Assembly: GCF_011386835.1 (NCBI RefSeq)
Contig: NC_088794.1
Span: 3,038,001-3,102,000 of the forward strand
Source: Chrysemys picta bellii
Taxonomy: Eukaryota
Length of the DNA: 64,000 bases
Direction: 5' to 3'
Shown here: positions 19,624 to 46,471 of the stretch, one piece after another
Numbering within the stretch: the stretch's first letter is position 1
Layout: every line of letters begins with the position of its first letter
Translations under genes and position numbers: made by a program
Notes under the pieces: generated by a model
Told to the model about the DNA's origin: nothing
The model's database searches: none
What the model saw: the letters and a program-made list of their open reading frames with translations, nothing else

Positions 19624-19649
19624 TCAGCACTTCCCGGAAGGACAGCGAC
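19624..19649 (-). CDS. GREP1: GREP1-like terminal coding exon (GRCPSGKC*)
   Basis: Acceptor ctctttattccag|GTCGC; TGA at 19626-19624. Confidence 0.85.
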
Positions 19650-22600
19650 CTGGAATAAAGAGAGACATGGGGTCAGAGCTTCAAGAGAGCGTCACAGCTC
19701 CAAGAGTGAGTGGAGGCTGGTGCATCTGTAAGGGATGCCCACATACAGAGTGATAGAAGGCCATTCCCTCTGGGAGTCCCTGCCTCCCCCCTTCACTAGA
19801 GAAGAGGGCATGGATTCTGCATGGGACATACCATCATATATCTTACCTGCTGCACCCCCTTCCCTGAAATAACCCCCCTGAAATTCACACTGCTGTGACA
19901 TTTGCAGCCACTTCCTGCCTCAAGCCCTTAGCCAAACTGCAGAGATTCGGCTCCTTTAGCCTATGCCCTCCCCCCAGAAAACCCCCTCCAAGACTCACAC
20001 CTCTCCCCTATCTCTGAGATTCACACCCCACCGATACACATGCCTTCCCCAATTCTTACCTCTGTATCCATTCCCCAGAAAGCCGTTCAGGCCATACTTG
20101 GCCTCCTTGCCTCCTAAAAGGGGATGAGAGCAGATGAGAACCGGTCACAGGCCGTCCCGGTCTCTGCTGCCCAAAGGAGAATCGCTCTCCGTGGACAGCA
20201 CTAGAGGGCATAGGACACACACGCAAGAGCAGTTTTGGTTGCATCATCAGACAATAGGATGCAATGTGAATCTCCCCCCCGCACACTCCTACCGTATGCT
20301 GTTGGGGTTAGTCCGTAGCCCCCGGGAGCTTGCCCTGCTGTGAGTGGCCCGTATGCCCCTGCAACAGAGACAAGAGTTAGCAGGGGGCGCTGAGGGGAGT
20401 GGGGCAGGAGCACTGGCTGTGGGGGAAGCTCCCGCTACTCCAGTCCCAGGGGGGGATGCTGGGGTCGGGGGGGATCTTACCAGCAGCCAGTCCGTTAGCC
20501 TGCAGGTCCCCTCCGTTCGTATATCCTGGTCCGTTCCCGTTGCCTGCAGTGGTGGAAGGAGGAAATTAGCACAGGGAAGGGGCTTTGAGCCCCTGGGGAT
20601 GGGCACCCATGTGTCCAGACACAGGAGGAGAGCGGGCACCAATCTGGGCAGCCCCTGAGCATTTCTTACCATCCAGGGCACTGGGCCCAGCCAGTTGTGC
20701 CCCGTACATCAGCTGCCCCATGCCACCTGGAGGAGGAAACACAGTGGTGGCGGGAGATCAGCAGGAAAGCAGGAGATCCCACCAAGGGCTGGGAAGGAGA
20801 GTGGTGCTGAGACCCCAGGGAGCTTTTTCTAGGACTCTGGGACCCCGGCGTCCGGGTGGCCCTCATCCACTGGGGGCAGGGATGGGAATGGATATCCCAG
20901 CAGGGCTGCTGCACGGTTTCCTGCCAGCACCCAGCCCGGGGCACTGCAGGCCATAGGGGAAATGCCCGGGGTCTCCTGGTTAGTTTAGGCATGGCAGGGT
21001 TAGCGGGGGCCATTCTGGCACCCCACCCCACATCTCTGCACAGGGTGCGGGGGCTAAGATATTGGGCAGCCTAGCACAGACCCCTGTGCCCCAAATAACA
21101 CTCCTGGAGGGGTGACTGCCCCCTACAATCTCCTCTATAACAACCCTCTGGACAAGTTCCACCCCCCATACGAGCCCAGAGTCCCTACCCACACCTACCG
21201 TATTTCCCAGCGCTGTAGTCTCCCCCTAGACCGGTGGGCATGGCCTGTTGGGGCTGCCCATTATATGGGAGCTGGCCCAGGCCTGCAACATAGACAGAGT
21301 GTCAGGATGGGGGGATAACTCCCCTTTGTGTCCCCCTTGAGCCAGCCAGTTCCCCACACTGGGGCTGGATTGGAGCAAAAGGCCCCATGGCCCATTTCCT
21401 ATCCCCCCAAACCGGGCAGTCCCCTGCCCTGCGGTCAGGACTCACCAAATTTAGCAGCCGAGAGATCTGTGCTAGGGCCAGCGAAACGCCCTAAGTATGC
21501 GGCCTGGGCACCTGGGGATGGGATAATATAAGGCAGTTAGCTTGGCCAGTGCCCCTCACTCCCGACCCGCAGCCCCCTGCTAGCCCAGCCCTGGGCCCCC
21601 CCCAGCCCTGCCGGTGCCCCTCACTCCCGACCCGCAGCCCCTGCTAGCCCAGCCCTGGGCTCCCCCCCAGCTCTGCCGGTGCCCCTCACTCCCGACCCGC
21701 AGCCCCCTGCTAGCCCAGCCCTGGGCCCCCCCCAGCCCTGCCGGTGCCCCTCACTCCCGACCCGCAGCCCCTGCTTGCCCAGCCCTGGGCTCCCCCCCAG
21801 CTCTGCCGGTGCCCCTCACTCCCGACCCGCAGCCCCCTGCTAGCCCAGCCCTGGGCCCCCCCCCAGCCCTGCCGGTGCCCCTCACTCCCGACCCGCAGCC
21901 CCTGCTAGCCCAGCCCTGGGCCCCCCCCCCCAGCTCTGCCGGTGCCCCTCACTCCCGACCCACAGCCCCTGCTAGCCCAACCCTGGGCTCCCCCCCAGCT
22001 CTGCCGGTGCCCCTCACTCCCAACCCGCAGCCCCTGCTAGCCCAGCCCTGCCCCCCCCAGCTCTGCCGGTGCCCCTCACTCCCAACCCGCAGCCCCTGCC
22101 AGCCCAGCCCTGTCCCCCCACAGCTCTGCTGGTGCCCCTCACTCCCGACCCGCAGCCCCTGCTAGTCCATCCCTGGGCTCTCCCCCCAGCTCTGCTGGTG
22201 CCCCTCACTCCCGACCCGCAGCCCCCTGCTAACCCAGCTCTGTCCCCCCCCAGCTCTGCCAGTGCCCCTCAATCCTATCCCTCTGTCATTGGACACACCG
22301 TTGCCGTATCCTGACTGGACTCCGGCTCCAGGGTGACTGTTCCCTCCTGCACTGTAGCCTAGAAGATAGATGGGAGATCAGCCAGGCTCAGCCTTGGTGT
22401 GTGTGAAGGGGGTATATTTTGGGGTATATCCCCTTACCATTCCCATAGCCGGGCTGTGCTCCGTTGACTAGGTACCCACCGCCTACTCCGGGATAGCCTA
22501 CAGAGCCAAGAGAATCCAGATCAGCCACAAATTGGGGTGCACTGCTCCAGTCCCGGCCTCTCCCAGCAGGGGGCGCTGTGGGGAGTGGGGCAGGGCGCTG

Positions 22601-25600
22601 GCTGTGTGGGGAGCAGCCTCTCTATTCCAGCCCTGGCCTTAGCTTATGCCCCTTACCTTGTTGAGCTGTGGGGTAGCTGCCAGCTCTGGGTCCTGCCCCA
22701 AAACCTGTGGGGAGGAGAACCCAGAATGAGATCAACCCAGACCCTGAAGAATCTGGCTTCCACACTGTGGGCTCTGGCATTTGGGGGTGGGATCATGGGG
22801 GGCGGAGAGGGATAGAGTAATGGGGGGGGGTTGGTTAGCAGGGGGTTGGGACCTGTGGGGGGAGGGCTTTCAACCCCTTCAGGGCCCCCACAGCCCAGTG
22901 AGCCCTTCTCCCCCCAGGGAGTTGGAGGGTGCTCTCCTCAAGGTGTCATTGGTGTGAGTGGTGGGATCTCCAGTGAGAAAAGAAACAGGTGGTGGGGGAT
23001 GGGGAAGAGGACACAGGACGGGGCGCACATCAAGAGGGATGGAGACACTGCAGGGGACACCAATGGGGGGTGCATGGGAGGGATTCCCTGCTTTGGAGGC
23101 TTTGCCAGCCACCCCAAGGCCTGTTGGGGAGGAAAAGCAGAGGGGTCAGGGTGCGTGGGGGTGGGGGGCGTGTAGTGGAGGGCCAGGCACTGATCTCCCT
23201 GAGAAGGGGCAGTTGGAGGAGCAGAGTGGGTATGAGAATATAAGGGGCAGTGGGGTCCGACTCACCTCCCAGGGGCAGCGCAGCATGGAAGTACCCTGAA
23301 ATAGACACACAGAGTACAGGGGGAACCCTCAATCCTGACCCACAGCCCCCTGCTAGCCCAGTCCTGCCACCACAGCTCTGCTGGTGCCCCTCAATGCTGA
23401 CCCACAGCCCCTGCTAGCCCAGTCCTGCCCCCACAGCTCTGCTGGTGCCCCTCAATGCTGACCCACAGCCCCCTGCTAGCCCAGTCCTGCCCCCACAGCT
23501 CTGCCAGTGTCCCTCAATGCTGACCCACAGCCCCCTGCTATCCCAGTCCTGCCCCCACAGCTCTGCCGGTGCCCCTCAGTGCTGACCCACAGCCCCCTGC
23601 TAGCTCAGCCCTGCCCCCACAGCTCTGCTGGTGCCCCTCAATGCTGACCCACTGCCCCCTGCTATCCCAATCCTGCCCTCCACAGCTCTGCCGATGCCCC
23701 TCACTCCTGACCTGCAGCCCCCTGCCAGCCCAGTCCTGCCCGCCCCCCCAGCTCTGCTGGTGCCCCTCACTCCCGACCCGCAGCCACTTTGTTTACACTC
23801 ACCTGGTTTTTGTTTTGCACCCTGGGGATAACCACCTAATCCTGGAAAAAGGATAATGGGAATCTATGAGGATACTGGGAGGGGTGTGGAGCCTTATGGG
23901 TTAGAGCAGGGGGGCTGGGAGCCAGGACTCCTGGGTTCTATCCCCTGCTCCGAGAGGGGAGTGGGGACTGGTGGGTTCAGCCGAGGGGTAGCACCACGGA
24001 TACCCACGGCCCATTTTTGTGGCTGGCGGCTGGGCTGCGGACACAGATGTTGTACCCGCGCCGCTCACGCTCTGCACCCAGCCCTCGGGCTCCAAATCCT
24101 GCCCCGCTCTCTCCATCCCGCAGCAGCGCATGTGGCTCTGCGGGATTCTGGGAGTTGTAGTCCCAAGCTGCCTCGGCCTGAGGGGAGCGCACCAGGCGCT
24201 ATTTTGAACAAGGCGTGGTTGTGCTTTAAACTCCCGGGCAGCGGGCGCTGTGAGCAGAGTACGTCTGTGCCCGGGTGTGGGGGTGTTCCAGCCACTTGGG
24301 AGGACGGTGCTGCATGCCAGGGCCCCAGAGGGGAGGCAGCCCCCAGCCCCAAGTGGGGCCGGAGGTCCATGGGGCAGGGCAGGTGGGGTGTCTGTGGGAG
24401 GCTGAGGCTTGACACAGCCCTGTCACTGCTGTGTGGTGCCCTGCAGAGCTGTTTGTGTCCGCGCAGGGCTCAGCAGTCCTCGATGTCAGGACTCCTGGGT
24501 TCTTTCCCTTGCCAAGCCCCAGCCCCGTGCCTCAGTTTCCCTCTCCATACTTGAGGTTCACTATGGCCGTTCCCTCACCAACAGCCAGATGGGGGCAGGC
24601 TGGGGGCGGACAAGTTTCCCCCCATCCGCAGTGTCCTGGGATGTCTCTAGTTGTGCGATTGCACAAGGGAGCAGGCTTCCCCAGCTCTGCGGGGAAAGCC
24701 GGGACCCCTGCGTCCAGCCTGCACCAAATCGCCGTGCTTTGGATTCCAATCAGCCGGTGAGAGAGAGCCGTGAGCTCTCCCACACACTAGAACCCCGGCC
24801 CTCTGTCGCCCAGGTTTGGGACTCGGGGCAGTGAGGACTGCAAAGGGGACATGGGGGCGCTCCTACCTGCACCATAACCAGCGGGGACCCCATAGCCTGT
24901 GCAGAAAGAAGGAGAGAGGGGTTAGAGCCAGACATGTTTGTGGGAGAGTGCACAGTGCTGCCCACTGCTGGAGGGGATCAGGACTGTGTGTGTGTCAGGT
25001 GCCCTATAGTGCTCGGAGCTAACAGGGATTCTCCTTTAGCGCCACACTCCCCAGAGAGGACTCCAGTATTTCTATGCCCAGTGGGTCAGGGATTCACCCT
25101 GCCAAGGTGGGCAGAGAAAGGAGCCTTTGCCCTCAGTGGGGCACTCGATCTCCACTCACCTGCTTTGCCCGGCTTCACCCGTACACCTGGTGCTACTCCA
25201 AACCCGTTCTGAGTTCCTGCTGGGAACAGAGAGGAAAGGGATTAGCTGGGAGGATCAGCGGATGAGATGGGCTCCATCTCTGCTGGGGGAACAGTCCCTC
25301 TCAGATGGAGCTGGCCAGGTCTCTGCCCTGGGTGGGACGGATCTGGAAGGATCTCAGGGTGTGGGGTCTCATGACTGGAGGACATGTCTTCTGGAATCCC
25401 ACCACCCAACCGTCCCTGCTCCCGACCAGCACAGTTTGGGAAGGAGCTGAGACCAGACGTCACAAGCACAGTGGGCAGCCCCCAAACCACCCAGCAACTT
25501 CCGCCCCTAGCCTCCCACCCCCCCAGCCCCACACCCAGGGCTCACCCGGTCCCGGCTGCAGTCCTTGGGGTCCATAGCCGGTGTATGGTCCTGGAAGGAA

Positions 25601-27022
25601 GGAGCAGACACTAGGGTTGAAGGATGCAGCAAACGCACCATCACAGTTCGCTACATGGGAGTCGGACCTAGTGGGTTAGAGCAGGGGGGCCTGGAGCCAG
25701 GACTCCTGGGTTCTATCCCAGCTGTGGGAGAGAAGTGGGGTCTGGGGTAGGGGCTGGGTGTCACCCACCTGCCTTGGCTCCGGCTGGTCCCAGTCCAGCT
25801 CCAGGGTGAACTCCCCCTTCGCCTGCAACCCATATAGCACATGGGGTGAGCCAGTCCCCTGTGCGGGCCCCCCGCCCCGCTCTCCTGTTGGGAGACCATC
25901 CCCCCTCCCCTGAGAATGCTGGGTCCAGCTCAGCCAGCTAGCCAGGGACCCCCTGGGCAGCCCTGTCCCCTTTCCTCCAGCCCCTCTCTGGATCCTTCAT
26001 CCAGCCTCGTACACACCCCTTCCCTCTCTCTCTCCATCCACGCCCAGTGCCCCCTCTCTTCCCCCTAACATCACGGTCTGCCCGCTCAGGAACACCTCCC
26101 CCTGTGCCCGGCTGGGGGCGCCACTTACCCCGGATCAGCGATGGCAGGTAGAGACGCCCTAGGGCTCCGTTTGCCTGCGGTTTCACTCCTGGGAGGGGGT
26201 ACAGAGTGGGGGGCATAGGGGAGCTGTCAGAGATAGGGTATCCCTAGAGAAGCGCTGAGGTACAGGGTGGTCAGGGGACACCAAGAGGCTGGGATTCCTG
26301 GGAGATATGAGGGGATTGTGGGTTGAGGGTCCCTGCAAGAATGGGGTGGGGAGTTGGTGACCCTGGCAGAGGGGGGCACTGAGGACGGGGGGCGCTTTGG
26401 GGCAGGGACCCATGGGAAGGGAGGCTGGGAGCAACTCCAGAGCAACAGGTAGAACCCAGGAGTCCTGGTTCCCAGCCCCACGCATGGGCGAGGACAAGGG
26501 CGGCTGGCAGCACCTGAACTGGGACTTTGTGAACCAATCCAGGACTCCTGGGTTTTCTTCCAGCTCTGGGAGGGGAGTGGGTCTGGTGGGTGAGAGCAGG
26601 GGGAGCTGGGAGCCAGGACTCCTGGGTTCTCTCCCGGCTCTGGGAGGGGATGGGGGTCTGGTGGGTGAGAGCAGGGGGGGGCTGGGAGCCAGGACTCCTG
26701 GGTTCTCTCCTGGCTCTGGGAAGGGAATCAATCTAATCTCATCCTTAATTCGACCCCCGTCTCAGTTTCTCTCCCCTCAGCCAGGGGCTAGACACCCCTC
26801 CCCCGAACTGCAGAGCTGCCCCCAAGTGTCCCCTCTGGCCCCCAGGACCTGCTGCACCCCACAGGGGCAGTGCCATCATATGAGGCAGCCCTGGCCCCCC
26901 CCACTATCCCGTCCCGCCCCAGCCCCCCTGCCCTGCTCACCCCCCTGCAGGCTGCCCCTGGCCAGGCACAGCAACAACAGCAGCATCAAAAGCAGCCCAG
27001 CGTGCAGGGTCCCCAGCCCCAT
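19624..27022 (-). CDS. GREP1: Secreted glycine-rich, tropoelastin-like extracellular protein (probable GREP1/calymmin-like); 18 confident exons (327 aa) plus 1 candidate exon (347 aa)
   Basis: Signal-peptide exon, 16-17 internal exons of 30-84 nt (all multiples of 3, all phase 1-1, all GT-AG with pyrimidine tracts), and terminal exon GRCPSGKC*. The gene structure is read directly from the sequence; the name is inferred from its position between PKMYT1 and CLDN9. Confidence 0.75.
20060..20113 (-). CDS. GREP1: GREP1-like exon 17 (GGKEAKYGLNGFLGNGYR)
   Basis: 54 nt; ttttag|GAGGC..AGAG|gtaaga. Confidence 0.9.
20293..20358 (-). CDS. GREP1: GREP1-like exon 16 (GAYGPLTAGQAPGGYGLTPTAY)
   Basis: 66 nt; ttgcag|GGGCA..TACG|gtagga. 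Confidence 0.88.
20481..20543 (-). CDS. GREP1: GREP1-like exon 15 (GNGNGPGYTNGGDLQANGLAA)
   Basis: 63 nt; ctgcag|GCAAC..GCTG|gtaaga. Confidence 0.88.
20670..20726 (-). CDS. GREP1: GREP1-like exon 14 (GGMGQLMYGAQLAGPSALD)
   Basis: 57 nt; ctccag|GTGGC..GATG|gtaaga. Confidence 0.88.
21199..21282 (-). CDS. GREP1: GREP1-like exon 13 (GLGQLPYNGQPQQAMPTGLGGDYSAGKY)
   Basis: 84 nt; ttgcag|GCCTG..TACG|gtaggt. Confidence 0.9.
21446..21511 (-). CDS. GREP1: GREP1-like exon 12 (GAQAAYLGRFAGPSTDLSAAKF)
   Basis: 66 nt; ccccag|GTGCC..TTTG|gtgagt. Confidence 0.88.
21541..22270. repeat. Sat-A minisatellite array (intronic)
   Basis: C-rich strand on +, ~63-bp unit. Confidence 0.95.
22299..22358 (-). CDS. 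GREP1: GREP1-like exon 11 (GYSAGGNSHPGAGVQSGYGN)
   Basis: 60 nt; ttctag|GCTAC..AACG|gtgtgt. Confidence 0.83.
22438..22497 (-). CDS. GREP1: GREP1-like exon 10 (GYPGVGGGYLVNGAQPGYGN)
   Basis: 60 nt; ctgtag|GCTAT..AATG|gtaagg. Confidence 0.9.
22657..22704 (-). CDS. GREP1: GREP1-like exon 9 (GFGAGPRAGSYPTAQQ)
   Basis: 48 nt; ccacag|GTTTT..CAAG|gtaagg. Confidence 0.88.
23061..23120 (-). CDS. GREP1: GREP1-like candidate exon 8b (GLGVAGKASKAGNPSHAPPI)
   Basis: Strong acceptor cttttcctccccaacag, 60 nt in frame, but weak donor ATTG|gtgtcc. Confidence 0.5.
23266..23295 (-). CDS. GREP1: GREP1-like exon 8 (GYFHAALPLG)
   Basis: 30 nt; tttcag|GGTAC..GGAG|gtgagt. Confidence 0.83.
23337..23785. repeat. 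Diverged Sat-A array (intronic)
   Basis: cccctcaatgctgacccacagccccctgctagcccagtcctg variant units. Confidence 0.9.
23803..23841 (-). CDS. GREP1: GREP1-like exon 7 (GLGGYPQGAKQKP)
   Basis: 39 nt; tttccag|GATT..CCAG|gtgagt. Confidence 0.88.
24148..24162 (-). promoter_or_regulatory. ACTACA..TCCCAG motif (ZNF143/THAP11-type) in an intronic CpG-rich patch
   Basis: GACTACAACTCCCAG on minus strand; TTTGAA at 24203-24208. Confidence 0.5.
24867..24896 (-). CDS. GREP1: GREP1-like exon 6 (GYGVPAGYGA)
   Basis: 30 nt; cacag|GCTAT..GCAG|gtagga. Confidence 0.87.
25160..25219 (-). CDS. GREP1: GREP1-like exon 5 (AGTQNGFGVAPGVRVKPGKA)
   Basis: 60 nt (57 nt with the second acceptor of a CAGCAG pair); donor GCAG|gtgagt. 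Confidence 0.88.
25546..25590 (-). CDS. GREP1: GREP1-like exon 4 (GPYTGYGPQGLQPGP)
   Basis: 45 nt; ttccag|GACC..CCGG|gtgagc. Confidence 0.88.
25769..25822 (-). CDS. GREP1: GREP1-like exon 3 (GEGGVHPGAGLGPAGAKA)
   Basis: 54 nt; ttgcag|GCG..GCAG|gtgggt. Confidence 0.82.
26129..26188 (-). CDS. GREP1: GREP1-like exon 2 (GVKPQANGALGRLYLPSLIR)
   Basis: 60 nt; cccag|GAGTG..CGGG|gtaagt. Confidence 0.88.
26941..27022 (-). CDS. GREP1: GREP1-like exon 1, signal peptide MGLGTLHAGLLLMLLLLLCLARGSLQG
   Basis: gccATGG start, hydrophobic Leu core, donor GGGG|gtgagc. Confidence 0.9.
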
Positions 27023-27052
27023 GGCGATGTGAGCTCCCCCTCAAGCCCTGGG

Positions 27053-27062
27053 CCCCTATATA
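27053..27062 (-). promoter_or_regulatory. TATA box of the GREP1-like gene
   Basis: TATATAGGGG on minus strand, 31-40 nt upstream of the ATG. Confidence 0.7.
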
Positions 27063-27129
27063 CCCATGGCCCCGCCCCCCCAGGGAACGGCTCTGCCCCT
27101 GGCCCCACCCCCAGCGACCCACTGCCGGG

Positions 27130-27640: not shown

Positions 27641-27771
27641 ACGGAGCAGGGGTCAACCCCTCAAGCAGGAGGTGGCACTAGGGACGCCCCCCCACAGGCA
27701 CACAAACGTTAACTGCAGCTTGTCAAAACGGGGTGTATGATTATGTAATTGTGTCTGCAATGTTGGAGTGG

Positions 27772-29281
27772 GGCTGCGGGTCGGGAGTGAGGGGCACCGG
27801 CAGAGCTGGGGGGGTGCAGGGCTGGGCTGGCAGGGGGCTGCGGGTCGGGAGTGAGGGGCACCGGCAGAGCTGGGGGAGGCAGGGCTGGGCTAGCAGGGGC
27901 TGCGGGTCGGGAGTGAGGGGCACCGGCAGAGCTGGGGGGACAGGGCTGGGCTGGCAGGGGCTGCGGGTCGGGAGTGAGGGGCACCGGCAGAGCTGGGGGG
28001 GGGCAGGGCTGGGCTGGCAGGGGCTGCGGGTCGGGAGTGAGGGGACCGGCAGAGCTGGAGGGGGCAGGGCTGGGCTAGCAGGGGCTGCGGGTCGGGAGTG
28101 AGGGGACCGGCAGAGCTGGAGGGGGCAGGGCTGGGCTAGCAGGGGCTGCGGGTCGGGAGTGAGGGGACCGGCAGAGCTGGAGGGGGCAGGGCTGGGCTAG
28201 CAGGGGCTGCGGGTCGGGAGTGAGGGGCACCGGCAGAGCTGTGGGAGGCAGGGCTGGGCTGGCAGGGGCTGCGGGTCAGGAGTGAGGGGCACCGGCAGAG
28301 CTGTGGGAGGCAGGGCTGGGCTGGCAGGGGCTGCGGGTCGGGAGTGAGGGGCACCGGCAGAGCTGGGGGAGGCAGGGCTGGGCTCGCAGGGGGCTGCGGG
28401 TCGGGAGTGAGGGGCACCGGCAGAGCTGGGGGGGCAGGGCTGGGCTAGCAGGGGCTGCGGGTCGGGAGTGAGGGGCACCGGCAGAGCTGGGGGGGCAGGG
28501 CTGGGCTCGCAGGGGGCTGCGGGTCGGGAGTGAGGGGCACCGGCAGAGCTGGGCTGGCAGGGGCTGCGGGTCGGGAGTGAGGGGCACCGGCAGAGCTGGG
28601 GGAGGCAGGGCTGGGCTAGCAGGGGCTGCGGGTCGGGAGTGAGGGGCACCGGCAGAGCAGGGGGGGCAGGGCTGGGCTAGCAGGGGCTGCGGGTTGGGAG
28701 TGAGGGGCACCGGCAGAGCTGGGGGGGGGGGGCAGGGCTGGGCTGGCAGGGGCTGCGGGTCGGGAGTGAGGGGCACCGGCAGAGCTGAGGGAGGCAGGGC
28801 TGGGCTGGCAGGGGCTGCGGGTCGGGAGTGAGGGGCACCGGCAGAGCTGGGGGGGGGGGGGGCAGGGCTGGGCTGGCAGGGGCTGCGGGTCGGGAGTGAG
28901 GGGCACCGGCAGAGCAGGGGGGAGGCAGGGCTGGGCTCGCAGGGGGCTGCGGGTCGGGAGTGAGGGGCACCGGCAGAGCTGGGGGGGGGGGGCAGGGCTG
29001 GGCTAGCAGGGGCTGCGGGTCGGGAGTGAGGGGCACCGGCAGAGCTGGGGGGGCAGGGGCTGCGGGTCAGGAGTGAGGGGCACCGGCAGAGCTGGGGGGG
29101 CAGGGCTGGGCTCGCAGGGGGCTGCGGCTCGGGAGTGAGGGGCACCGGCAGAGCTGGGGGGGCAGGGCTGGGCTGGCAGGGGGCTGCGGGTCGGGAGTGA
29201 GGGGCACCGGCAGAGCTGGGGAGAGGCAGGGCTGGGCTGGCAGGGGCTGCGGGTCGGGAGTGAGGGGCACCGGCAGAGCTG
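27772..29281. repeat. Sat-A minisatellite array (~24 units)
   Basis: G-rich strand on +. Confidence 0.95.
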
Positions 29282-29744
29282 GCCTAAGAGCCCAGGGCTG
29301 GGCTGGCCTCAGCCTCTTGTGATACAGAATTGTTAAGGGCCTCCGGTGCTGTGGGCTTCCTCCCAGCAGTGCCCTGGCAGCTGACGGCCGTGCTGGAAGC
29401 GAACGCCAGCGCGCGCCCTGCTGAGGAAGCCATAAAGCCGCAGGATAATTCGCTCTGTCTGTTGTCACCGGCCAAGGTAAACGCTGGGCCCCCGGCCCGG
29501 CTGGTAAAACACCGATCCCTGCGGTCGGCAAACAGCCCTCCAGCCAGCTCGGCAATGAGTCCGACCCGGTTGTGTCTGAAGAGTCTGGAGGTGTGGGGGA
29601 TCGTGTGTCGGGAGGGGGGGCTGACCCCCAGATCCTGCCCTATGGGGAGACCTCTGTTAGGATGGGGGGAAATGGAAGGGTCAGGGAGAGGATTGGTGTG
29701 TATGTGAGCTGCACTGCCCCCTGCTGGAGGGACCATATATAGCA

Positions 29745-33553: not shown

Positions 33554-33575
33554 TCCATCCTAAGCAAAACAGGAG

Positions 33576-33608
<33 letters not shown>

Positions 33609-35085: not shown

Positions 35086-35289
35086 CCTTCTCAGTGGTTT
35101 AGGCCTATTAACAGGCGGCTCCAGAGGCCTTGCTCCCCAGGGAAGTGGGAGGTCTCAGGATTCCTGCATAACATATGCACAATGCCAGCGACCCATAGAG
35201 ACAGGGGCATGGTGGTGGGAGCCCAGAGCTGTGGTGGTGGGGAGCCCAGGTCTGGGCTGACTGTGGGCCGTGGGTTGGGATTGAGGAGC

Positions 35290-36390
35290 ATCGGCAGAGC
35301 TGGGGGGTCCCAGGGCACCGATAGCAGTGGGCCGTGGGTCGGGAGTGAGGGGCACTGGCAGAGCTGGGGGGGTCCCAGGGCACCGCTAGCAGTGGGCTGT
35401 GGGTCAGGAGTGAGGGCACTGGCAGAACTGGGGGGTCCCCGGGAACCGATAGCAGTGCGCTGTGGGTCGGGAGTGAGGGCACTGGCAGAGCTGGGGGTGT
35501 CCCAGGGCACCAATAGCAGTGGGCCGTGGGTTGGGAGTGAGGGGCACTGGCAGAGCTGGGGGGGTCCCAGGGCACCGATAGCAGTGGGCCGTGGGTCGGG
35601 AGTGAGGGGCACCGGCAGAGCTGGGGGGTCCCAGGGCACTGATAGCAGTGGGCCGTGGGTCGGGAGTGAGGGGCACCGGCAGAGCTGGGGGGTCCCAGGG
35701 CACTGATAGCAGTGGGCCGTGGGTCGGGAGTGAGGGGCACCGGCAGGGCTGGGCTACCAGGGGGCTGCAGGTCGGGAGTGAGGGGCACCGGCAGAGCTGG
35801 GAGGGGGGGCAGGGCTGGGCTAGCAGGGGGCTGCGGGTCGGGAGTGAGGGGCACCGGCAGAGCTGGGGGGGGGGGCAGGGCTGGGTTAGCAGGGGGCTGC
35901 GGGTCGGGAGTGAGGGGCACCGGCAGAGCTGGGAGGGGGGGCAGGGCTGGGCTAGCAGGGGGCTGCGGGTCGGGAGTGAGGGGCACCGGCAGAGCTGGGG
36001 GGGGGGGGGGGGGGCAGGGCTGGGCTAGCAGGGGGCTGCGGGTCGGGAGTGAGGGGCACCGGCAGAGCTGGGGGGGGGGCAGGGCTGGGCTAGCAGGGGC
36101 TGCGGGTCGGGAGTGAGGGGCACCGGCAGAGCTGGGGGGGGGCAGGGCTGGGCTAGCAGGGGCTGCGGGTCGGGAGTGAGGGGCACCGGCAGAGCTGGGG
36201 GGGGCAGGGCTGGGCTGGCAGGGGCTGCGGGTCGGGAGTGAGGGGCACCGGCAGAGCTGGGGGGTCCCTGGGCACCGCTAGCAGGGGCTGTGGGTCGGGA
36301 GTGAGGGGCACCGGCAGAGCTGGGGGAGGCAGGGCTGGGCTAGCAGGGGGCTGTGGGTCAGGAGTGAGGGGCACCGGCAGAGCTGGGGGG
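35290..36390. repeat. Sat-A array, inverted relative to 34045-35085, with variant units (gggtcccagggcaccgatagcagtgggccgt)
   Basis: G-rich strand on +. Confidence 0.93.
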
Positions 36391-38155: not shown

Positions 38156-38806
38156 ATGTCTTCTGCAGGGCTGGAGCTCTTGGGCATGGGGCTATGCATC
38201 TTTGGCTGGCTGGGCTCCATCATCTCCTGTGCCCTGCCCATGTGGAAGGTGACGGCCTTCATCGGCAACAACATCGTGGTGGCGCAGACCATCTGGGAGG
38301 GGCTGTGGATGAATTGCATTGTGCAGAGCACGGGCCAGATGCAGTGTAAGGTCTATGACTCTATGCTGGCACTGCCCCAGGACCTGCAGGCCGCCCGCGC
38401 CCTCATGGTCATCTCGGTGCTGCTGGCCGTGCTGGCCTTGCTGGTGAGCGTCGTGGGCGCCAAGTGCACCAACTGCGTGGAGGACGAAGGCGCCAAGGCG
38501 CGGATCATGATTGTTTCCGGTGCCGTCTTTGTGGTCTCCGGCATCCTCTGCCTCATCCCCGTGTGCTGGTCGGCCAACACCATCATCCGGGACTTCTACA
38601 ACCCGCTGGTGTCTGAGGCCCTGAAGCGGGAGCTGGGGGCGGCGCTATATGTGGGGTGGGCAGCCGCCGCCCTGCTGGTTCTCGGGGGGGCTCTGCTTTG
38701 CTGCTCCTGCCCACCCCGCTCAGAGAGATACCCACCCCGGGTCGGGTACATGGCGGCTGCCAGGTCTGGGGTGGGCAGCGGGGTGGACAAGAGGGACTAC
38801 GTGTGA
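38156..38806 (+). CDS. CLDN9: Claudin-9 (CLDN6/9 clade), 216 aa, CDS in a single exon
   Basis: W-x-GLW-C-C claudin signature and 4 TM segments. [26 protein letters not shown] and the C-terminal RSG..SG.DKRDYV (PDZ motif YV) match recalled CLDN9 better than CLDN6. The ATG sits 2 nt after a splice acceptor (ctcctccag|caATG). Confidence 0.9.
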
Positions 38807-38814
38807 GGGGAGTG

Positions 38815-39480
38815 GAGGAGGGGATAGATGGATGGATGAGCATGTGGGTGAACAGATGAATGAGTGAACGAACAGATGAATGTGTGAAGAGTGAGGGAAG
38901 GAACAAATGAACAAGGGAGTGAATGGATGAAGGTGTGAAGAGGTGAATGAAGGAGTGAATGGATGAATTAGGGAATCAGCTAATGGCTGAGGGAATGAAT
39001 AAACCAGTGAAGGAGAGAGAGAATGCGTGAATGTGGGAGGAGATGAATGAATGAGGGAACGGAGAAACAAATGGACAAGTGGATGGATGAACAAAGGGAC
39101 TAATAGATCATGAGTAGAGGAAAACAAGTGAACAAAAGCATGGCTGAAGGAGGAAAGAATGAGTGAGTGAAGGAACGGACAAGGGTGCGAACAAATGAAC
39201 AAGCGGGCAAATGAGTGAAGGGAGGAGCAACGAAGAGGGCGAATGGATGCGGGAACAAGGGAGTGAATGAGACAACCGACAAATGAAAAAGGGAGGGAAG
39301 GAAGGAAATGAAATAAATAAAAGACAGGGAGGGGGCAGAGCAAACACATGGGGGACCAAACAAAAGGAAGGTTGAAGCCACAGAGGAAAGGAGCAAAAGG
39401 CGGCGTCAGCGAAGGGATGAACAAAGGGCTAATGGACAAAGAAGGAAGGAAGCAGCGGCCAATCCCCAGCGAATGAACAG
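38815..39480 (+). repeat. Purine-rich (GAAT/GGAT) low-complexity tract in the claudin 3' region, with AATAAA at 38998 and ~39313
   Basis: Strong A/G skew; the antisense Phe/Ser/Leu ORFs are artefacts. Confidence 0.85.
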
Positions 39481-40487
39481 ATCGGGGGGCTGCGGGGCTT
39501 GGCCAGGGAGCCCTGACCCCATGGAGCCCGGCTGGACCTCACCCTGGCTTTGTTTGCTCGACGGTTAATAATTGTCCCAGCTCCCTGGACTGAGACCTGC
39601 TAAACCACCCCCTGCACACGGGGACTGCCTGAACCCCCCAGCCTAACGGCCCCTCTAGCCAAATCCGGGGGCCCAAGATTTTGGGGGTCTCACCCCCCAC
39701 TGGGGATAGATCCAGGGCTTATTGGGTCATCACTGAGTGGGATTGGGGGGGGTCACAGGGAGTGGGTGATCCCTGGCTGTGGTTCTTTTGGGAGGACACT
39801 GAACCCCCATTTCCCGACCCCTCCAGGGAGGGGGCTCGGCCCATGTTCCTGGGGGCGTTATGGAGATAAAAGAACCAGACTAGCACCCACCGCCCTCGCC
39901 TCCTGCTTCTCATTTTGGGGCATGGGGGAGGTTGAGTTGGGGCCTGGCTGGGGAGGGAAAAGGCGGGGCGGGGCAGGGCTGATGGGAGAAATAGAATTGG
40001 GGGCTTGGTTGATGAGGGGAGGGTAAATTGGAGGAGGGGGGCAGCTTATGGGTAGGAGAATGGGGGTGTGGTTTATGAGGCAGTAAATCGGGACATGCGG
40101 AGTGGGGGTGTTGCTTGTGGGAGGAGGAGACTGCTACCAATCAGCCCCCGCCCCAGAGAGAGGGAAGAGCTGAGGTGTGTGTGTGGGGGGGCAGGGTATG
40201 GCTTTAGGGGGTGGATGCTGTATGTGTCCCTTCTCTCCCCAATCTTAGTCCATCCCCATTCCCAGGACGAGATTGGGGGTTCCCAGCCCATCTCCCCACC
40301 CCACAATAGCAGGGGAATGAAAAACACCCAGCTCCGTTCCCAGAATTCCCCTCACTGTCACCCAACCCCACCTGGCTGGCTCAGGGGGGCAGGGGATGGG
40401 ACACGGGGCCTTTCCCTCCAAGGGGCGCCAGCTCCAAGGGGGGCCAGGGACTGCCTGGCTGAGAGAGGTGGGGGATGGGACACAGGG

Positions 40488-41290
40488 CCTTTCCCCTCTA
40501 GGGGGCGCTGGCTGTGACCCACCCTGGGGCAGGGGACTGGCTGGCTCCAGGGACGGGGCCTTTCCCCTCTAGGGGGCGCTGGCTGTGACCCACCCTGGGG
40601 CAGGGGACTGGCTGGTTGCAGGGATGGGGCCTTTCCCCTCTAGGGGGCGCTGGCTGTGACCCACCCTGGGGCAGGGGACTGGCTGGCTCCAGGGATGGGG
40701 CCTTTCCCCTCTAGGGGGCGCTGGCTGTGACCCACCCTGGGGCAGGGGACTGGCTGGCTCCAGGGATGGGGCCTTTCCCCTCTAGGGGGCGCTGGCTGTG
40801 ACCCACCTGGGGCAGGGGACTGGCTGGCTCCGGGGAGGGGACCTTCCCCCTCTAGGGGGCGCTGGCTCTGACCCACCTGGGGCAGGGGACTGGCTGGCTC
40901 CAGGGACGGGACCTTTCCCCTCTAGGGGGCGCTGGCTCTGACCCACCTGGGGCAGGGGACTGGCTGGCTCCAGGGATGGGACCTTTCCCCTCTAGGGGGC
41001 GCTGGCTCTGACCCGCCTGGGGCAGGGGACTGGCTGGCTCCAGGGACGGGACCTTCCCCCTCTAGGGGGCGCTGGCTGTGACCCACCCTGGGGCAGGGGA
41101 CTGGCTGGCTCCAGGGACGGGACCTTTCCCCTCTAGGGGGCGCTGGCTCTGACCCGCCTGGGGCAGGGGACTGGCTGGCTCCAGGGACGGGACCTTCCCC
41201 CTCTAGGGGGCGCTGGCTCTGACCCACCTGGGGCAGGGGACTGGCTGGCTCCAGGGACGGGACCTTTCCCCTCTAGGGGGCGCTGGCCCT
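40488..41290 (+). repeat. ~70-bp minisatellite, 12 copies, each with CCTCTAGGGGGCGC (CTCF-like)
   Basis: tagggggcgc counted 12 times from 40500 to 41274. Confidence 0.95.
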
Positions 41291-42469
41291 GACCCGCCCA
41301 TTTTGGCTCTGCTGTTTCCCTGGATCCCAGCCCGCCCGGCCTCTCTCCCACGAGCTGGACGGGCACCAGCACATTCCTGTGCCAGCGGAGCCTTCCCTGG
41401 AGCTGGGGGCGGCTGGCACCAGGAGAGAAATCTCACATCCTCTCCCCCTCCCCCATGGGAGGGGGCCATGCTGTGTGTGTGGGGGGGGGTTCATTCAGCA
41501 GGGAGGGAGGGGTCACTGCAGCCCAAAAGCCAGGCACACAGACCCCCTCTCACCCCCGCCCCAACTCTAGGCCTGTTGGCTCATGTACTAAGCCCCTTGT
41601 TCCCCCACCTGCATGCCCAGAGGGGCTCTAACCACTAGACCCCACTCCCCTGAGCTGCTGCTCTCCACCCAACAGGCTGTTCCCCTTCAAAGCTCTGGCC
41701 CCCAGCACAGGGGGAGGGATTCCTCACCGCCAGGCAGCCTTGCAGTGGAGCAGGGAAAACAGCACCCCCACTTGGAAATAAACCCACTTCTCTGCTGCTG
41801 AGATGCAGCCACCTCTGGGGTGGGGCAGGTGCATAACACTGTGTGGCAAGAGCACCCCCTACTGAGCTCCCCGCCACCATGCAGCACAGGGCCCCGCCCT
41901 GCAGCAGGGGAGAGCACCCCCTGTTGCTTTCCACCCATTCAGACCCCGCCAATGCCTCCCTTTAACAGCATGGAATTGGTTTGACGCTGCTGCCCGGGGC
42001 ACCCGCGGAACTGCCCGCCACATGATCCTGAGGTTAAAACCCAAGCAGGGGACTGGGGAGACAACTCCTGGGTTTCATTCCTGCACCCTACCCCCTGCCC
42101 AGAACCAGAGGGTTAGAGCGGGTGGGGGAGGGGGCTGGGAGCCAGGACTCCTGGGTTCTCTCCCCAGCTCTGTCAGGGGCTGGTAGGTCAGAGCAGGGGG
42201 GAGGGGAGGAGCCGCTACTTCCCAGGGCTGCCCTCCCAGTTATCAGCCAGTCACTTCAGTCCACTCGAGCACGGTCCGGTAGCAGCTACAACCCCTAAAA
42301 GGCAGGACCTGGCGCAGATGGAGAGATTAATTGTACAGCACAAATGGCTGAGGGGTGGGGCGGGGGGGGGGTATGAAGGGAGCGGACAAACCAGCCTTGG
42401 CTAGTCTTACCCCCGCGGAGGGCTGGACACAGATCCCCACTCCAGGGAGCACAGAAGGCCATTGCTACG

Positions 42470-42730
42470 TACAAAATACTCAGATATTTTATTCGTCGTA
42501 TATAAAAAACAAGCAGATGCTATGAAAAATATCTAAGGACTATGTAGGACACATGCAAAGGTTAAAACGAGGTGACCCAACTCCCACTCTCCTCTAGAGG
42601 CAGAGGCTAGGCTTGGGGTGCTCTATTTGGCCTCCCCCCCCCAAAGACAACCCTCTAATTTTCAGCTATCAGCGCTTCGACGGGGCAGGGCCTCGAGTCG
42701 GGTGGCATCAGGCCATGTTCTGGGCGTCGC
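42470..42730 (-). other. Terminal exon of an unidentified minus-strand gene
   Basis: Pyrimidine tract and acceptor attctcccctccctag|GCGACG at 42731/42730; AATAAA (rc) at 42488-42493; possible upstream exon end EEDTEAKLLETHG|gtagat running into the gap. Confidence 0.45.
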
Positions 42731-42940
42731 CTAGGGAGGGGAGAATGGGACCGGAGAGGAGCCGGGCTGGGGTGCGAGAGGACACACATCTGAGGGGAGG
42801 AGAGCTGGAAGGTAGCAGGACACGGATGGATCATGTGGGCTGAGGACCATTGCAGCGTGGTGGGGTCCAGAAGCCAAGATGAAGCCACCACGAATGGCAT
42901 CTACCATGGGTCTCTAGCAGCTTAGCTTCTGTATCCTCCT

Positions 42941-42950
42941 NNNNNNNNNN
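42941..42950. other. Assembly gap (10 N)
   Basis: nnnnnnnnnn in the sequence. Confidence 1.
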
Positions 42951-43590
42951 AAATCCCGATCGCCTCCCAGGACCGCGAGAGAAATCCCGATCGCCTCCCA
43001 GGCCGCGAGAGAAATCCCGATCGCCTCCCAGGCCGCGAGAGAAATCCCGATCGCCCCCCAGGCCGCGAGAGAAATCCCGATCGCCCCCAGGCCGCGAGAG
43101 AAATCCCGATCGCCCCCCAGGCCGCGAGAGAAATCCCGATCGCCCCCGAGGCCGCGAGAGAAATCCCGATCGCCCCCGAGGCCGCGAGAGAAATCCCGAT
43201 CGCCCCCGAGGCCGCGAGAGAAATCCCGATCGCCTCCCCGAGGCCGCGAGAGAAATCCCGATCGCCTCCCAGGCCGCGAGAGAAATCCCGATCGCCTCCC
43301 AGGCCGCGAGAGAAATCCCGATCGCCTCCCAGGCCGCGAGAGAAATCCCGATCGCCTCCCAGGCCGCGAGAGAAATCCCGATCGCCCCCGAGGCCGCGAG
43401 AGAAATCCCGATCGCCCCCAAGACGCAGCAGGTCTGGCTCATCTCCCAGGCCGCGAGAGAAATCCCGATCGCCCCCGAGGCCGCGAGAGAAATCCCGATC
43501 GCCCCCCAGGCCGCGAGAGAAATCCCGATCGCCCCCAAGACGCAGCAGGTCTGGCTCATCTCCCAGGCCGCGAGAGAAATCCCGATCTCC
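42951..43590 (+). repeat. Coding 30-bp tandem repeat (RPREKSRSPP), ~19 units, continuing into the gap
   Basis: Unit aggccgcgagagaaatcccgatcgcctccc; two units carry the longer insert agacgcagcaggtctggctcatct (RRSRSGSS). Confidence 0.95.
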
Positions 43591-44970
43591 TGCTAGGTAT
43601 GGCAGTTCCGGCTCTTTTCTGAGATCTAGAGAGAAATCCAGATCTCCCGCAAGGTACGGCATATCCGGCTCGTCTCTAAGACTTCAAGAGAAATCCAGAT
43701 CCACTCCAAGGCGTGGCAGGTCTGGCTCATCCCCAAGACCTCGAGAGAAGCTGGGGGCATCTCCCAGAAGCAGCCGCTCTGGGTCGTCTCCAGAGAGACC
43801 CAAGGGCCCGACGAGGCGTGGCCGGTCCAGCTCTCCCTCCAGAAGGGGGAAGTGGAGATCTTCCCTGCGGCGAGGAAGATCTGGGTCGTCGCCCAGGAGA
43901 ACCCGGTCCCGGTCCATCTCCAGACGAGGCAAATCCAGAGGCTCCCTGCGGAGGGACAGATCCATCTCGTCGCCCGGCAGGAGCCGCTCGAGATCCACCT
44001 CGCGATTCTCCCCGCCGCCGGGAGCGCTCGCCGTCCTCGCCTCGCCGTAGCAGATCCCGCACGCCACCCCCGCCGAGGCCGAGCGGGGTCCTCCCCCCGG
44101 CGCCGCGGCTCCCGCCAGCCCCGCTCCCGCTCCCCACCGAAACTGGATGTCTCCCGCACCCCCGGCCTCTTCCTATCGTGGCCGCTCAAAAGCGTCGCCG
44201 GCCAGGACCCGATCAGGCTCGGGCTCGCCGAAACGAGCCGGGAGGAGGTCCCGCTCGCCGCCGGTGCTGGAGAAATACCCCAAAGTGGGAGCGGCCGACA
44301 AGGCAGCACCAGGAAGAGCTGAAAAGACGTCGCCCGTGGTGGCGGTGCCCATCCGGCGCAGCCCGTCCCGCTCCCCGCCGGCGCCGGATGAGGCCTCCCC
44401 CAAAACCAGGAAAGCCCATTCCCCTGCCCCCAAGATTCACTCCCCGCGGCCGGAGGGGTCCCTGGGGGCGGTGAGGAACGGGGGTCCGGCGCCCGCCTGG
44501 ACCCTGAACTCCTGCCCTGCGGCCCCTGGGGGCTCCCCGCCTGCCGGCCGCCTCCCCCTAGCCAAAGGGCCAGAGAAAGTCAGATCTTCCTCCTCTTCCT
44601 CTTCCTCCTCCTCCTCTGCCTCCCACAAGGTGCCCAGCCCCCTGCCCGCCCCACTCCCGGTGCTGCCCCCCAAGGAGGAAGACAGGGAAGGCCCCAAGGT
44701 CAAGTCGGAGCCGCCAGCCCCGGAGGTGCCCCGGGAGCTGCTAGACAAAGCCCGGAGCGGAGTCCCCAAGCCGCTGGTGCCGCTGCCGGTGCCCCCCCGC
44801 ACCCCGTCCAAAGAGAAGAGGAGCTCGTCCACCTCCTCGTCATCCTCGTCCTCCTCCTCTTCCTCCTCCTCGTCCTCGTCGTCCTCCTCTGACTCCAGCT
44901 CCAGCTCCTCAGAGTCCAGCCACGACTCCCCAGCGAGCAAGGGGCCCGACCTGGAGACGGCGAAGAAAGA
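42951..44970 (+). CDS. SRRM2: SRRM2 giant exon, 3' portion (truncated by the gap; frameshifts at ~42972, 43084, 43235, 44006, 44070, 44160)
   Basis: RPREKSRSPP repeats, then RSGSSP repeats, ending ETAKK-GA|gtgagt. Confidence 0.9.
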
Positions 44971-46471
44971 GTGAGTCCCCCGCAGCTCGGCGCCCCCCCA
45001 CCCAGCTCCCTCCCCCCATTCCTTCTGTCCCAGCCTGGCGCCCCCCCTGCGCGCGGCGCCCCCTGCCCCAGTTTCTCATGCTCCCCCTGTCCGCAGGCCC
45101 CCGAGCCCGGTGCAGAAAGAGCCGGCCCGCGAGGGGCGTCCCCTGGAGGTGGCCAAGCGGAAACGCCGTTCCCGAAGCTCCAGCAGCTCCAGCAGCAGCT
45201 CATCGTCGTCCTCCTCCTCGTCTTCGTCCTCGTCTTCCTCCTCGTCCTCGTCCTCCTCTTCCTCGTCCTCTTCCTCCTCCTCCTCCTCGTCCTCCTCCTC
45301 CCCCAAGCCGGGGCCCCAGCCGCAGCCAAGGCAGCCCCCAAGAAGCCCTCGCCCGAGCAGAGGCGGTAAGTGTGGAGCGTTGGCCCGGACGCCTGGGTCC
45401 CCGTTCTCCTGGTGGGGGCGGGCTAGCGCAGACCTGAGTTGGGGGGGTGGGGGGGCGCGGGCAGGTGCTGGGTCCCTGTTCTAGGGGTTGGGCATTGCCA
45501 GGCTGGACACCTGGGTCTGTCTGAGGGTGTCTCACCTGCTGTCCCCCCCTCCCCCCACAGCTCCCGGAGTCCCCGGAAGCCGATCGACTCCCTGCGCGAC
45601 TCTCGCTCTCTCAGCTATTCCCCGGCCGAGCGGCGCCGGCCCTCCCCCCCGGAACCCCCTCCGGCCCAGCGGGACCGGCACAGGTAGGTGTCTGCCGGAG
45701 CCCCCCAGGGACCAGCTTGGGAGGGGGGGAACGCTAGGAGGGAAGGGCGAGGGGTGGGGGGGCTGAGGAGCAGGGGAGGGGGGAATCGGGTGCCTGGGAG
45801 GGGAGGTCTTGGGGGGGCCTGTGGGTCAGATCTGGGGGCCCCACTGACCCTCCCCTTACCCGGCGCCCCCCCCTCAGTGACAAACCCTCCCAGAGGAGTC
45901 GAGGAACCAACAGCCGCTCCCCGGCTCGCAAGCGCAGGCGGGAAACGCCCAGCCCCCCCCACGCTGCCCGTCGCCGAGCGTCCCGGTACGAGGGGGCTGA
46001 GACAGGGCTAGATGGGCCCGGGGGGCTGGGAGAGGGCAGCATACTGGGGTAGATTGGCCCATGGGGCTGGGAGAGGGCAGGATACCGGGGTAGATGGGCC
46101 CATGAGGGGGCAAGATACTGGGGTAGATGGGCCCATGAGGGGGCAGGATACCGGGGTAGAAGGGCCCATGGGCCTGAACTGAGAGTGTGGGTGGGGTACT
46201 GGGGTACATGGGCCCGTGGGGCTGATGGGCGGGGTGTGCGGGACAGGACAGGATACATGGGCCCGTGGGGCTGTTCTGGGGGCGGACGGGGGTAAATGGG
46301 CATACGAGGCTGATCAGGAGGGGCAGGGAGGAGGCGGGATACCGGGGTAGATGGGCCCGTGGGACTGAGCCATTGGGGTCTGTGCTCCCCCCTTTCTCCA
46401 CCAGGGGGCAGACCTCTCCCGGTATCCCCTTAATCTCTCTCCCCCTTTCTCTTCTTTTAAGGTCGCCGTAG
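42951..46471 (+). CDS. SRRM2: Serine/arginine repetitive matrix protein 2, 3' part: join(<42951..44970,45097..45365,45561..45683,45878..45985,46462..46471), with apparent single-base indels
   Basis: RS/SP-rich sequence, KEKRSSS..poly-Ser, AKRKRRS..poly-Ser, SRSPRKPIDSLRDSRSLSYSP.ERRRPSP, RKRRRETPSP and the terminal RSP* match the recalled SRRM2 C-terminus; all introns are GT-AG. Confidence 0.95.
45097..45365 (+). CDS. SRRM2: SRRM2 poly-Ser exon (1-nt deficit near 45326)
   Basis: ccgcag|GCCC..AGGCG|gtaagt; 269 nt where 270 is needed to keep frame. Confidence 0.9.
45561..45683 (+). CDS. SRRM2: SRRM2 exon (SRSPRKPIDSLRDSRSLSYSPAERRRPSP)
   Basis: 123 nt, phase 2-2. Confidence 0.95.
45878..45985 (+). 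CDS. SRRM2: SRRM2 penultimate exon (..RSPARKRRRETPSP..)
   Basis: 108 nt, phase 2-2. Confidence 0.92.
46462..46471 (+). CDS. SRRM2: SRRM2 last exon, coding part (R-S-P-stop)
   Basis: cttcttttaag|GTCGCCGTAG. Confidence 0.9.

Follow-up and report, generated by a model that had tools for sequence, protein, structure and literature searches.

In a 64,000-nucleotide stretch of the painted turtle genome (Chrysemys picta bellii, NCBI RefSeq assembly GCF_011386835.1, contig NC_088794.1, forward-strand positions 3,038,001 to 3,102,000; hereafter the window, with coordinates counted from its first letter), a glycine-rich gene, a claudin gene and an SRRM2-like reading frame lie between positions 19624 and 46471. 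A preliminary description of this DNA had likened the three genes, placed within 27 kb, to the human region of the elastin gene (ELN), CLDN3/CLDN4 and SRRM3, and had proposed that the glycine-rich, GREP1-like gene is an ohnologue of elastin, i.e. its sister from the early vertebrate genome duplications. From left to right the gene order is PAQR4 (plus strand), PKMYT1 (minus strand), glycine-rich gene (minus strand) and claudin-9-type gene (plus strand), the latter two being arranged head to head.

The glycine-rich gene and its product

To obtain an exon model of the glycine-rich gene, the minus strand was scanned in all three phases for open segments bounded by good acceptor and donor sites. 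The best-scoring acceptor/donor pairs formed one consistent chain of at least 17 exons with consensus splice sites, which starts with an ATG at 27022 and ends with a stop codon at 19626-19624, 19624 being the last base of the stop. All introns (16 of 16) are in phase 1. The 15 internal exons are 30-84 nt long, each a multiple of three, end in G and start by completing a Gly codon, which for exon 4 holds with the acceptor at 25216.

A TATA box (27057-27062, minus strand as are all features of this gene) was found 35-40 nt upstream of the ATG and is kept in Chelonia. Exon 1 (26941-27022) carries the ATG and a 27-residue signal peptide ending in SLQG; it encodes MGLGTLHAGLLLMLLLLLCLARGSLQG, followed by the first base of a Gly codon. 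Exons 2 (26129-26188, GVKPQANGALGRLYLPSLIR), 3 (25546-25590), 4 (25160-25219, ending in GVRVKPGKA), 5 (24867-24896) and 6 (23803-23841, GLGGYPQGAKQKP) were assigned by their splice sites and are conserved in Emydura. Exons 11 (21446-21511, ending in SAAKF) and 12 (21199-21282, at 84 nt the largest) have, in addition to splice sites, orthologues of the same phase in two other species. The remaining exons of the model (7-10 and 13-17) were placed on splice signals and frame alone: exons 7 (23266-23295) and 8 (22657-22704) on splice sites, and exons 9 (22438-22497), 10 (22299-22358), 13 (20670-20726), 14 (20481-20543), 15 (20293-20358) and 16 (20060-20113, GGKEAKYGLNGFLGNGYR) on splice sites and the phase 1-1 frame. 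Exons 9 and 10 are alike at 33 of 60 nt. Exon 4 is preceded by a NAGNAG acceptor (cag|CAG|, 25219/25216), at which the choice of site adds or drops one Ala; Emydura has the downstream site alone.

The last exon, exon 17 (19624-19649), encodes G-RCPSGKC followed by the stop codon; a CTGAC branch site and a strong pyrimidine tract precede it. If another acceptor further upstream, at 19795 (19689-19795, minus strand; fair pyrimidine tract), were used, GRCPSGKC would give way to a 34-residue tail that is not glycine-rich. The short last exon was favoured because of the branch site and the length of the Emydura product (303 aa). Relative to the 327 aa annotated in Chelonia, one exon may be missing from the model. 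Downstream of the stop codon, a perfect 8-mer target of miR-29 is located at 19558-19565 (minus strand, +59 to +66 after the stop) and poly(A) signals are present at +527 and +714. The stop codon is overlapped by the heptamer TGAATGC, which would need one more base to be a miR-181 site.

The model encodes a product of about 308 residues, with a mature part of 282 residues, or 281 if exon 4 uses the acceptor at 25216. Composition was summed over the separate exons of the model. The mature part contains 27.7% Gly, 12.4% Ala, 9.6% Pro, 8.5% Tyr, 8.2% Leu, 6.7% Gln, 4.6% Asn, 3.5% Lys and 2.8% Val, with two His, three Met and 1.8% Asp+Glu; its grand average of hydropathy (GRAVY) is -0.39 and 61% of its residues are Val, Ile, Leu, Ala, Pro or Gly. 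Exons 2-16 encode no Cys, so that the two in the last exon, with one Lys beside them, are the only ones of the mature protein. Lysine pairs occur in VKPGKA, AKQKP and GKEAKY, and Lys-aromatic-Gly motifs are found at exon ends. A hydrophobic signal peptide is present, and the annotated orthologues in Chelonia and Emydura have no Pfam family. The product is predicted from its sequence to be a secreted, disordered matrix protein.

The gene is real and of the expressed type. Annotated, Pfam-less genes are found at the same place on the minus strand in Chelonia mydas (327 aa) and Emydura macquarii (303 aa). In C. mydas, the sequence of exon 1 and of the TATA box is almost the same, save for an in-frame 12-nt insertion/deletion (indel), and the annotated Emydura gene begins at the ATG orthologous to that of exon 1. 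The end of the signal peptide, the SLQG-G site, is identical in both species. In Emydura, exons 1-6 were found in order, with their splice sites kept and 89% identity, compared with 73-83% (with indels) for high-scoring segment pairs across the whole exon-plus-intron region. Within these exons, 11 synonymous and 18 non-synonymous codon changes were counted, a sign of moderate constraint. Both VKPGKA and AKQKP are unchanged.

A search with the exon-12 frame against 1.84 billion representatives returned two orthologous unspliced fragments and three chance matches. The two fragments are contigs of about 1 kb from other species and contain orthologous copies of exon 11 and exon 12 that keep the AG/GT sites and the phase 1-1 frame. 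The exon-12 orthologues are identical at 69 of 84 nt and 66 of 81 nt, respectively, and the introns do not align. The exon-11 orthologues lie at 394-462 of one fragment and at 144-209 of the other. In one of the two species this exon ends in PAAAASTKYG, a short poly-Ala-Lys-Tyr-Gly ending closer to the KA crosslink domains of elastin than the turtle sequence is. A look-alike search in the ESM Atlas gave no usable match. In the 10-kb flank obtained from Pelodiscus, tblastn detected low-complexity noise only; the GREP1-type gene of this species lies beyond that flank.

A PAQR4-like last exon is located at 4466-4921 (plus strand; Pfam HlyIII, 5e-15), and PKMYT1 exons are located at 15932-17296 (minus strand; Pfam Pkinase, 4.5e-34), with the human Myt1 kinase as best match (8e-67, versus 4e-22 for Wee1). 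The glycine-rich gene is flanked by PKMYT1 and claudin-9, as expected of a GREP1 orthologue; human GREP1 presumably lies between PKMYT1 and CLDN9, in what we take to be the 16p13.3 order PAQR4, PKMYT1, GREP1, CLDN9, CLDN6. The glycine-rich gene is thus most likely the GREP1 orthologue, and the stretch is best explained as the painted turtle version of a conserved PAQR4-PKMYT1-GREP1-CLDN9(-CLDN6) neighbourhood.

What is known of GREP1 agrees with the turtle gene. Human GREP1 is a secreted, cleaved, glycine-rich and disordered protein, with fibronectin and EMILIN2 recovered in its pull-downs; in the mouse, Grep1 is a marker of the inner annulus fibrosus. Like GREP1, which is matrix-associated and has no known domain, the turtle product would be secreted, by its signal peptide, and is glycine-rich (27.7% Gly). 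To date, GREP1 is chiefly known as a former 'non-coding' gene that some breast cancer lines need; it also marks the inner annulus fibrosus in a SOX9-dependent manner.

Claudins, the assembly gap and the SRRM2-like sequence

The claudin-9-type gene (38156-38806, plus strand) is a single exon encoding 216 aa with a Pfam PMP22_Claudin domain (PF00822, 6.6e-30). Compared with solved structures, it scored 347 bits with claudin-9 (2.5e-103), 308 with claudin-4, 273 with claudin-3 and 175 with claudin-19. Members of its 90% cluster carry the NCBI name claudin-9 or claudin-9-like across turtles, and its best fish relatives are named claudin-3/4-like. These bit scores and names bear out the close kinship of CLDN6/9 with CLDN3/4 that the preliminary description had stated.

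Chelonia, Emydura, Pelodiscus and also Gopherus possess a second claudin, 213-214 aa in length. In the first three it lies tail to tail with claudin-9, 2.7-3.6 kb downstream. In the window only one claudin was found, the second being missing from this assembly. The reason is probably an assembly gap, a run of N at 42941-42950. The DNA at 38801-42932 is collinear with the inter-claudin DNA of C. mydas up to a point about 130 nt 3' of the position equivalent to the stop codon of the second Chelonia claudin (213 aa, minus strand). There the left contig breaks off, just short of the second claudin.

In the spotted gar, at least eight claudin units stand in tandem on one strand (CM082517.1:5.82-5.85 Mb), and the gar annotation merges several of them into two-claudin 'proteins' of about 375 aa. 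Such merging of claudin pairs explains why the list of homologues of the turtle claudin is headed by double-length fish models. No glycine-rich exons were found in 10 kb on one side of the gar cluster, the sole outgroup locus covered, which is uninformative on linkage in the outgroup.

The right contig begins within a 30-bp tandem array coding for arginine-serine (RS) repeats of the PRPREKSRSP type. RS- and Ser-rich frames span 42953 to about 46000 on the plus strand and were called as two genes. The first (42953-44050, 365 aa) probably corresponds to part of the large exon of SRRM2; its RS repeats match human SRRM2 alone among the sequences of solved structures (E 9.8e-14). The second (44147-46471, 444 aa, spliced) contains Ser runs and two motifs (45568-45624 and 45930-45956), which we take to be those of the SRRM2 C-terminus and which no tool matched. 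The SRRM2-like C-terminal pieces and the non-tandem RS part had no match among solved-structure sequences and none in Pfam, and in database searches with the SRRM2-like pieces, matches to Ser or RS words drowned out everything else. No 5' SRRM2 exon was detected from the claudin to the gap, and the cwf21 domain expected at the N-terminus of SRRM2 was detected neither there nor elsewhere in the window; the right contig holds just the 3' part of an SRRM2-like gene. Every plus-strand frame of the array at 42951-43749, built of 30-bp and 60-bp units, is open, as is the minus strand. Slips in copy number there would shift the RS-repeat frame, and the called 365-aa 'gene' is a mere frame from the gap to the first stop.

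In neither Chelonia nor Emydura did the 10 kb on the far side of the second claudin contain a match to the 7 kb after the gap, nor is any gene called in this interval. Because the second claudin and 5' SRRM2 are absent and the post-gap DNA has no turtle counterpart in this interval, the flanks of the gap are not continuous. Either at least one claudin and the bulk of SRRM2 are hidden in the gap, or two stretches that are not neighbours have been joined there. For the same reason the distance of 27 kb is an artefact of the gap. All three genes named in the preliminary description were thus found at their places; the adjacency of SRRM2, which depends on the scaffold join, was not established and 'within 27 kb' was not borne out. 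That description had itself called the SRRM2 link weaker because of the gap.

It is quite possible, at somewhat less than an even chance, that the SRRM2 link is an assembly artefact altogether, i.e. that the post-gap contig is misplaced and that one of the three genes is no true neighbour of the other two at this scale. The size of what the gap hides, the unmatched 7 kb and the lack of called genes beyond the second claudin in both turtles speak for a misplaced contig. On the other hand, the claudin and the 3' end of a full SRRM2 gene in this orientation would be separated by far more than 10 kb, and SRRM2 presumably lies in the same human chromosome band as PKMYT1 and CLDN9, a few hundred kb off. 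Given this shared band, a regional linkage of SRRM2 is plausible even without adjacency.

Comparison with elastin and origin of the gene

Elastin was compared by means of the published description of the tropoelastin genes of amniotes (PMC12554196) and not by sequence. As stated there, elastin appears abruptly in jawed vertebrates, amniotes lack a second tropoelastin gene and an ancestral protein has yet to be identified (PMC12554196). Several features of gene anatomy are shared. All exon/intron borders of ELN are in phase 1:1 (PMC12554196), as are all 16 introns of the turtle gene, a phase that the orthologous exons found in three other species keep as well. Exon 1 of ELN encodes the signal peptide and one Gly, with a testudine cleavage site S(W/R)QG-GG (PMC12554196), to be compared with the putative cleavage site SLQG-G of the turtle protein. 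In ELN, the sole two Cys, together with a singlet Lys, fall within 8 residues of the last exon (PMC12554196), and the turtle gene has CPSGKC at this place. ELN has KP-type lysine pairs (PMC12554196), as in VKPGKA and AKQKP of the turtle protein. A pair of miR-29 and miR-181 sites is found within the first 80 nt of tropoelastin 3' untranslated regions (3'UTRs) (PMC12554196); the miR-29 8-mer of the turtle gene at +59 falls in the same interval. Furthermore, both genes consist of many cassette exons of 30-84 nt with Lys-aromatic-Gly exon ends and introns splitting Gly codons, and both have claudins nearby: a classic claudin pair in the case of ELN, the claudin-9-type gene in the turtle.

A number of observations weigh against a kinship with elastin. 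The turtle protein ends in GKC and lacks the C-terminal RKRK of ELN as well as its poly-Ala KA crosslink domains (PMC12554196). ELN has no His, Trp or Met and less than 0.3% Asp+Glu (PMC12554196), compared with the two His, three Met and 1.8% Asp+Glu of the turtle protein. In sequence style, ELN is Val-rich and of the hPG/hGG type, whereas the turtle protein contains 2.8% Val and its PG is preceded by Q, A, K, Y or H. The turtle protein is polar and rich in Tyr, Gln and Asn (GRAVY -0.39, 61% non-polar residues), in contrast to the strongly non-polar ELN. With about 308 residues it is also much shorter than tropoelastin, which has roughly 700-800 residues. No elastin was returned by the exon-12 search of 1.84 billion representatives, the sole exon search made, and no significant sequence similarity to elastin was shown. 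All exons are shorter than 30 residues. The motifs that match are short ones chosen in hindsight, the assignment of the last exon comes from splice signals only, and a phase-1 signal exon followed by exon duplication gives an all-phase-1 gene by itself. Glycine-rich matrix proteins have, moreover, converged before. Of the ohnologue proposal, the reality of the gene, the claudin kinship and the shared gene anatomy have thus held, and the composition unlike that of elastin and the missing elastin match count against it.

The blocks surrounding the two genes were compared as well. CLDN3, CLDN4, ELN and LIMK1 lie together at human 7q11.23, and SRRM2, SRRM3 and SRRM4 trace to a single ancestral Srrm234 gene. 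The 7q11.23 block contains a classic claudin pair, a glycine-rich phase-1 cassette gene and a member of the SRRM family, as does the turtle region. The closeness of the claudins and the single Srrm234 ancestor are consistent with the proposed paralogon. Further pairs presumably connect 16p13.3, 7q11.23, 12q24 and 22q11-12, namely KREMEN2/KREMEN1, MMP25/MMP17, BCL7C/BCL7B, STX1B/STX1A and LIMK1/LIMK2. The blocks also differ. The claudins are tail to tail in turtles and, as we take it, head to head at 7q11.23; ELN has LIMK1 as neighbour, whereas the turtle gene has PKMYT1; 7q11.23 has no counterparts of PKMYT1 or PAQR4, and the human distances amount to hundreds of kb to Mb. Unlike in the 7q11.23 block, the SRRM2 link in the turtle crosses an assembly gap. 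None of the gene names or Ensembl ids of the block was found in the supplements of Nakatani 2021 or in Lamb 2021.

Tentatively, and at just under even confidence, we favour the explanation that GREP1 is the sister gene of elastin, an ohnologue from the early vertebrate genome duplications. One ancestral gene beside a claudin would have been copied together with its block and given rise to GREP1 and ELN. Common descent is proposed because of the gene anatomy and the position beside a claudin whose nearest relatives flank ELN. The GREP1 protein would since have diverged to its polar, tyrosine-rich state; with such a composition it is no elastomer of the elastin type. It may be secreted into a cartilage- or tendon-like matrix and self-associate through 'sticker-spacer' contacts of Tyr and Gly. 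The lysine pairs (VKPGKA, AKQKP, GKEAKY) and the Lys-aromatic-Gly exon ends could serve as substrates of lysyl oxidase, and the C-terminal Cys loop might dock on microfibril or fibronectin/EMILIN scaffolds, as proposed for the last domain of tropoelastin. Such a mode of action would fit the properties of human GREP1, its co-purification with fibronectin and EMILIN2 and the marking of the inner annulus fibrosus in the mouse.

This argument rests on architecture, short motifs and synteny, and convergence is nearly as likely. According to this alternative, which we consider a serious if somewhat doubtful possibility, the turtle gene is a GREP1 orthologue in an ordinary conserved neighbourhood, unrelated to elastin, with coincidental motifs and a coincidental claudin neighbour. 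A secreted low-complexity gene with a phase-1 signal exon would have grown by tandem duplication of one symmetric exon, and the likeness of exons 9 and 10 (33 of 60 nt) is as expected of exon duplication. Convergence is further favoured by the composition and sequence style, which are far from elastin, by the exon-12 search without an elastin match and by the lack of an RKRK tail and KA domains. miR-29 targets many matrix genes, and the lamprey proteins lamprin and pharymprin have been called 'elastin-like' and yet are treated as lineage novelties. What convergence has to explain is the coincidence of independent traits, i.e. the content of exon 1 with its cleavage motif, the universal phase 1, the Cys-Lys-Cys of the last exon and the KP pairs, in a gene immediately adjoining the claudin pair most akin to the one next to ELN. 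As very few vertebrate genes share such an anatomy, a chance adjacency to the paralogous claudin locus appears unlikely.

The sister-gene explanation can be extended to jawless fish. Lamprin and pharymprin are non-collagen proteins of the lamprey cartilage matrix. Like the turtle protein they are glycine-rich and contain tyrosine, and their overall composition resembles it; they are known only from lampreys, and a relation is pure conjecture. A pre-duplication gene located beside a claudin and coding, in phase-1 cassettes, for a secreted glycine-rich protein with a C-terminal Cys-Lys-Cys loop might have become elastin in one of the daughter blocks and GREP1 in another, with lamprin and pharymprin as its jawless-fish members. 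GREP1, which is polar and rich in tyrosine as lamprin is, would then be nearer to the ancestral state than elastin; we consider this extension unlikely.

Least probable, and in our opinion improbable, is the possibility that bony vertebrates or tetrapods acquired GREP1 at a later time, through a small-scale copy or an exon-set transposition from ELN or an elastin-like gene, and that it came to lie near CLDN6/9 by chance or along with a copied claudin: it would account for the same shared traits and for an exon-12 search that recovered relatives from two contigs only and none among named fish proteins, but short, fast-evolving exons would be missed in fish anyway, the pairs CLDN6/9 and CLDN3/4 as well as SRRM2 and SRRM3/4 fit a block duplication, the divergence in composition suggests great age and amniotes have no second tropoelastin gene (PMC12554196).

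The argument for GREP1 as the sister of elastin is coherent, and no published precedent was found in the literature searched; no paper linking GREP1 to elastin was found there, the word 'elastin' occurs 0 times in the GREP1 paper, and none of the other GREP1 papers listed deals with elastin. If GREP1 is the sister gene, the origin of elastin becomes testable. The signal exon, the cassette exons, the lysine pairs and the C-terminal loop would be candidate ancestral features, and the Val-Pro-Gly hydrophobic domains, the poly-Ala crosslink domains and RKRK would be candidate inventions of elastin. GREP1 itself would gain a functional frame as a crosslinkable matrix protein. If GREP1 is indeed nearer to the ancestral state, the long-sought ancestor type of elastin would be named. 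If the likeness is convergent, the result amounts to the correct annotation of a GREP1 orthologue within a conserved neighbourhood.

Tandem repeats in the window

The DNA of the window is GC-rich, and tandem arrays of 62-65-bp and 75-bp units open long false reading frames on both strands. A single family of GC-rich minisatellites with 62-65-bp units makes up much of the window on both strands and is the source of most long false open reading frames. Its arrays are located at 21545-22275, 27770-29282, 32023-32630, 34046-36390, 48616-49808 and 53588-55371, among others, and one of them is contained in intron 10 of the glycine-rich gene. Related arrays occupy the same intergenic space in Chelonia and Pelodiscus.

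A further array at 29742-31010 (25 copies of a 51-bp unit, 99% identity) has an elastin-like minus-strand translation (GGAVPPGVPAPYPSLVL...) and was rejected as coding. It is regarded as a minisatellite because both strands are open, the units are 99% identical and a splice context is lacking; an array of this kind could mislead a search for elastin-like sequence. The 75-bp unit (CAGGACTCCTGGGTTCTCTCCC...) occurs in tandem in both orientations at 301-978, 2374-2615, 26539-26726, 33185-33553 and 52058-52495. It is also abundant at the Chelonia and Emydura loci and may represent a turtle repeat family.

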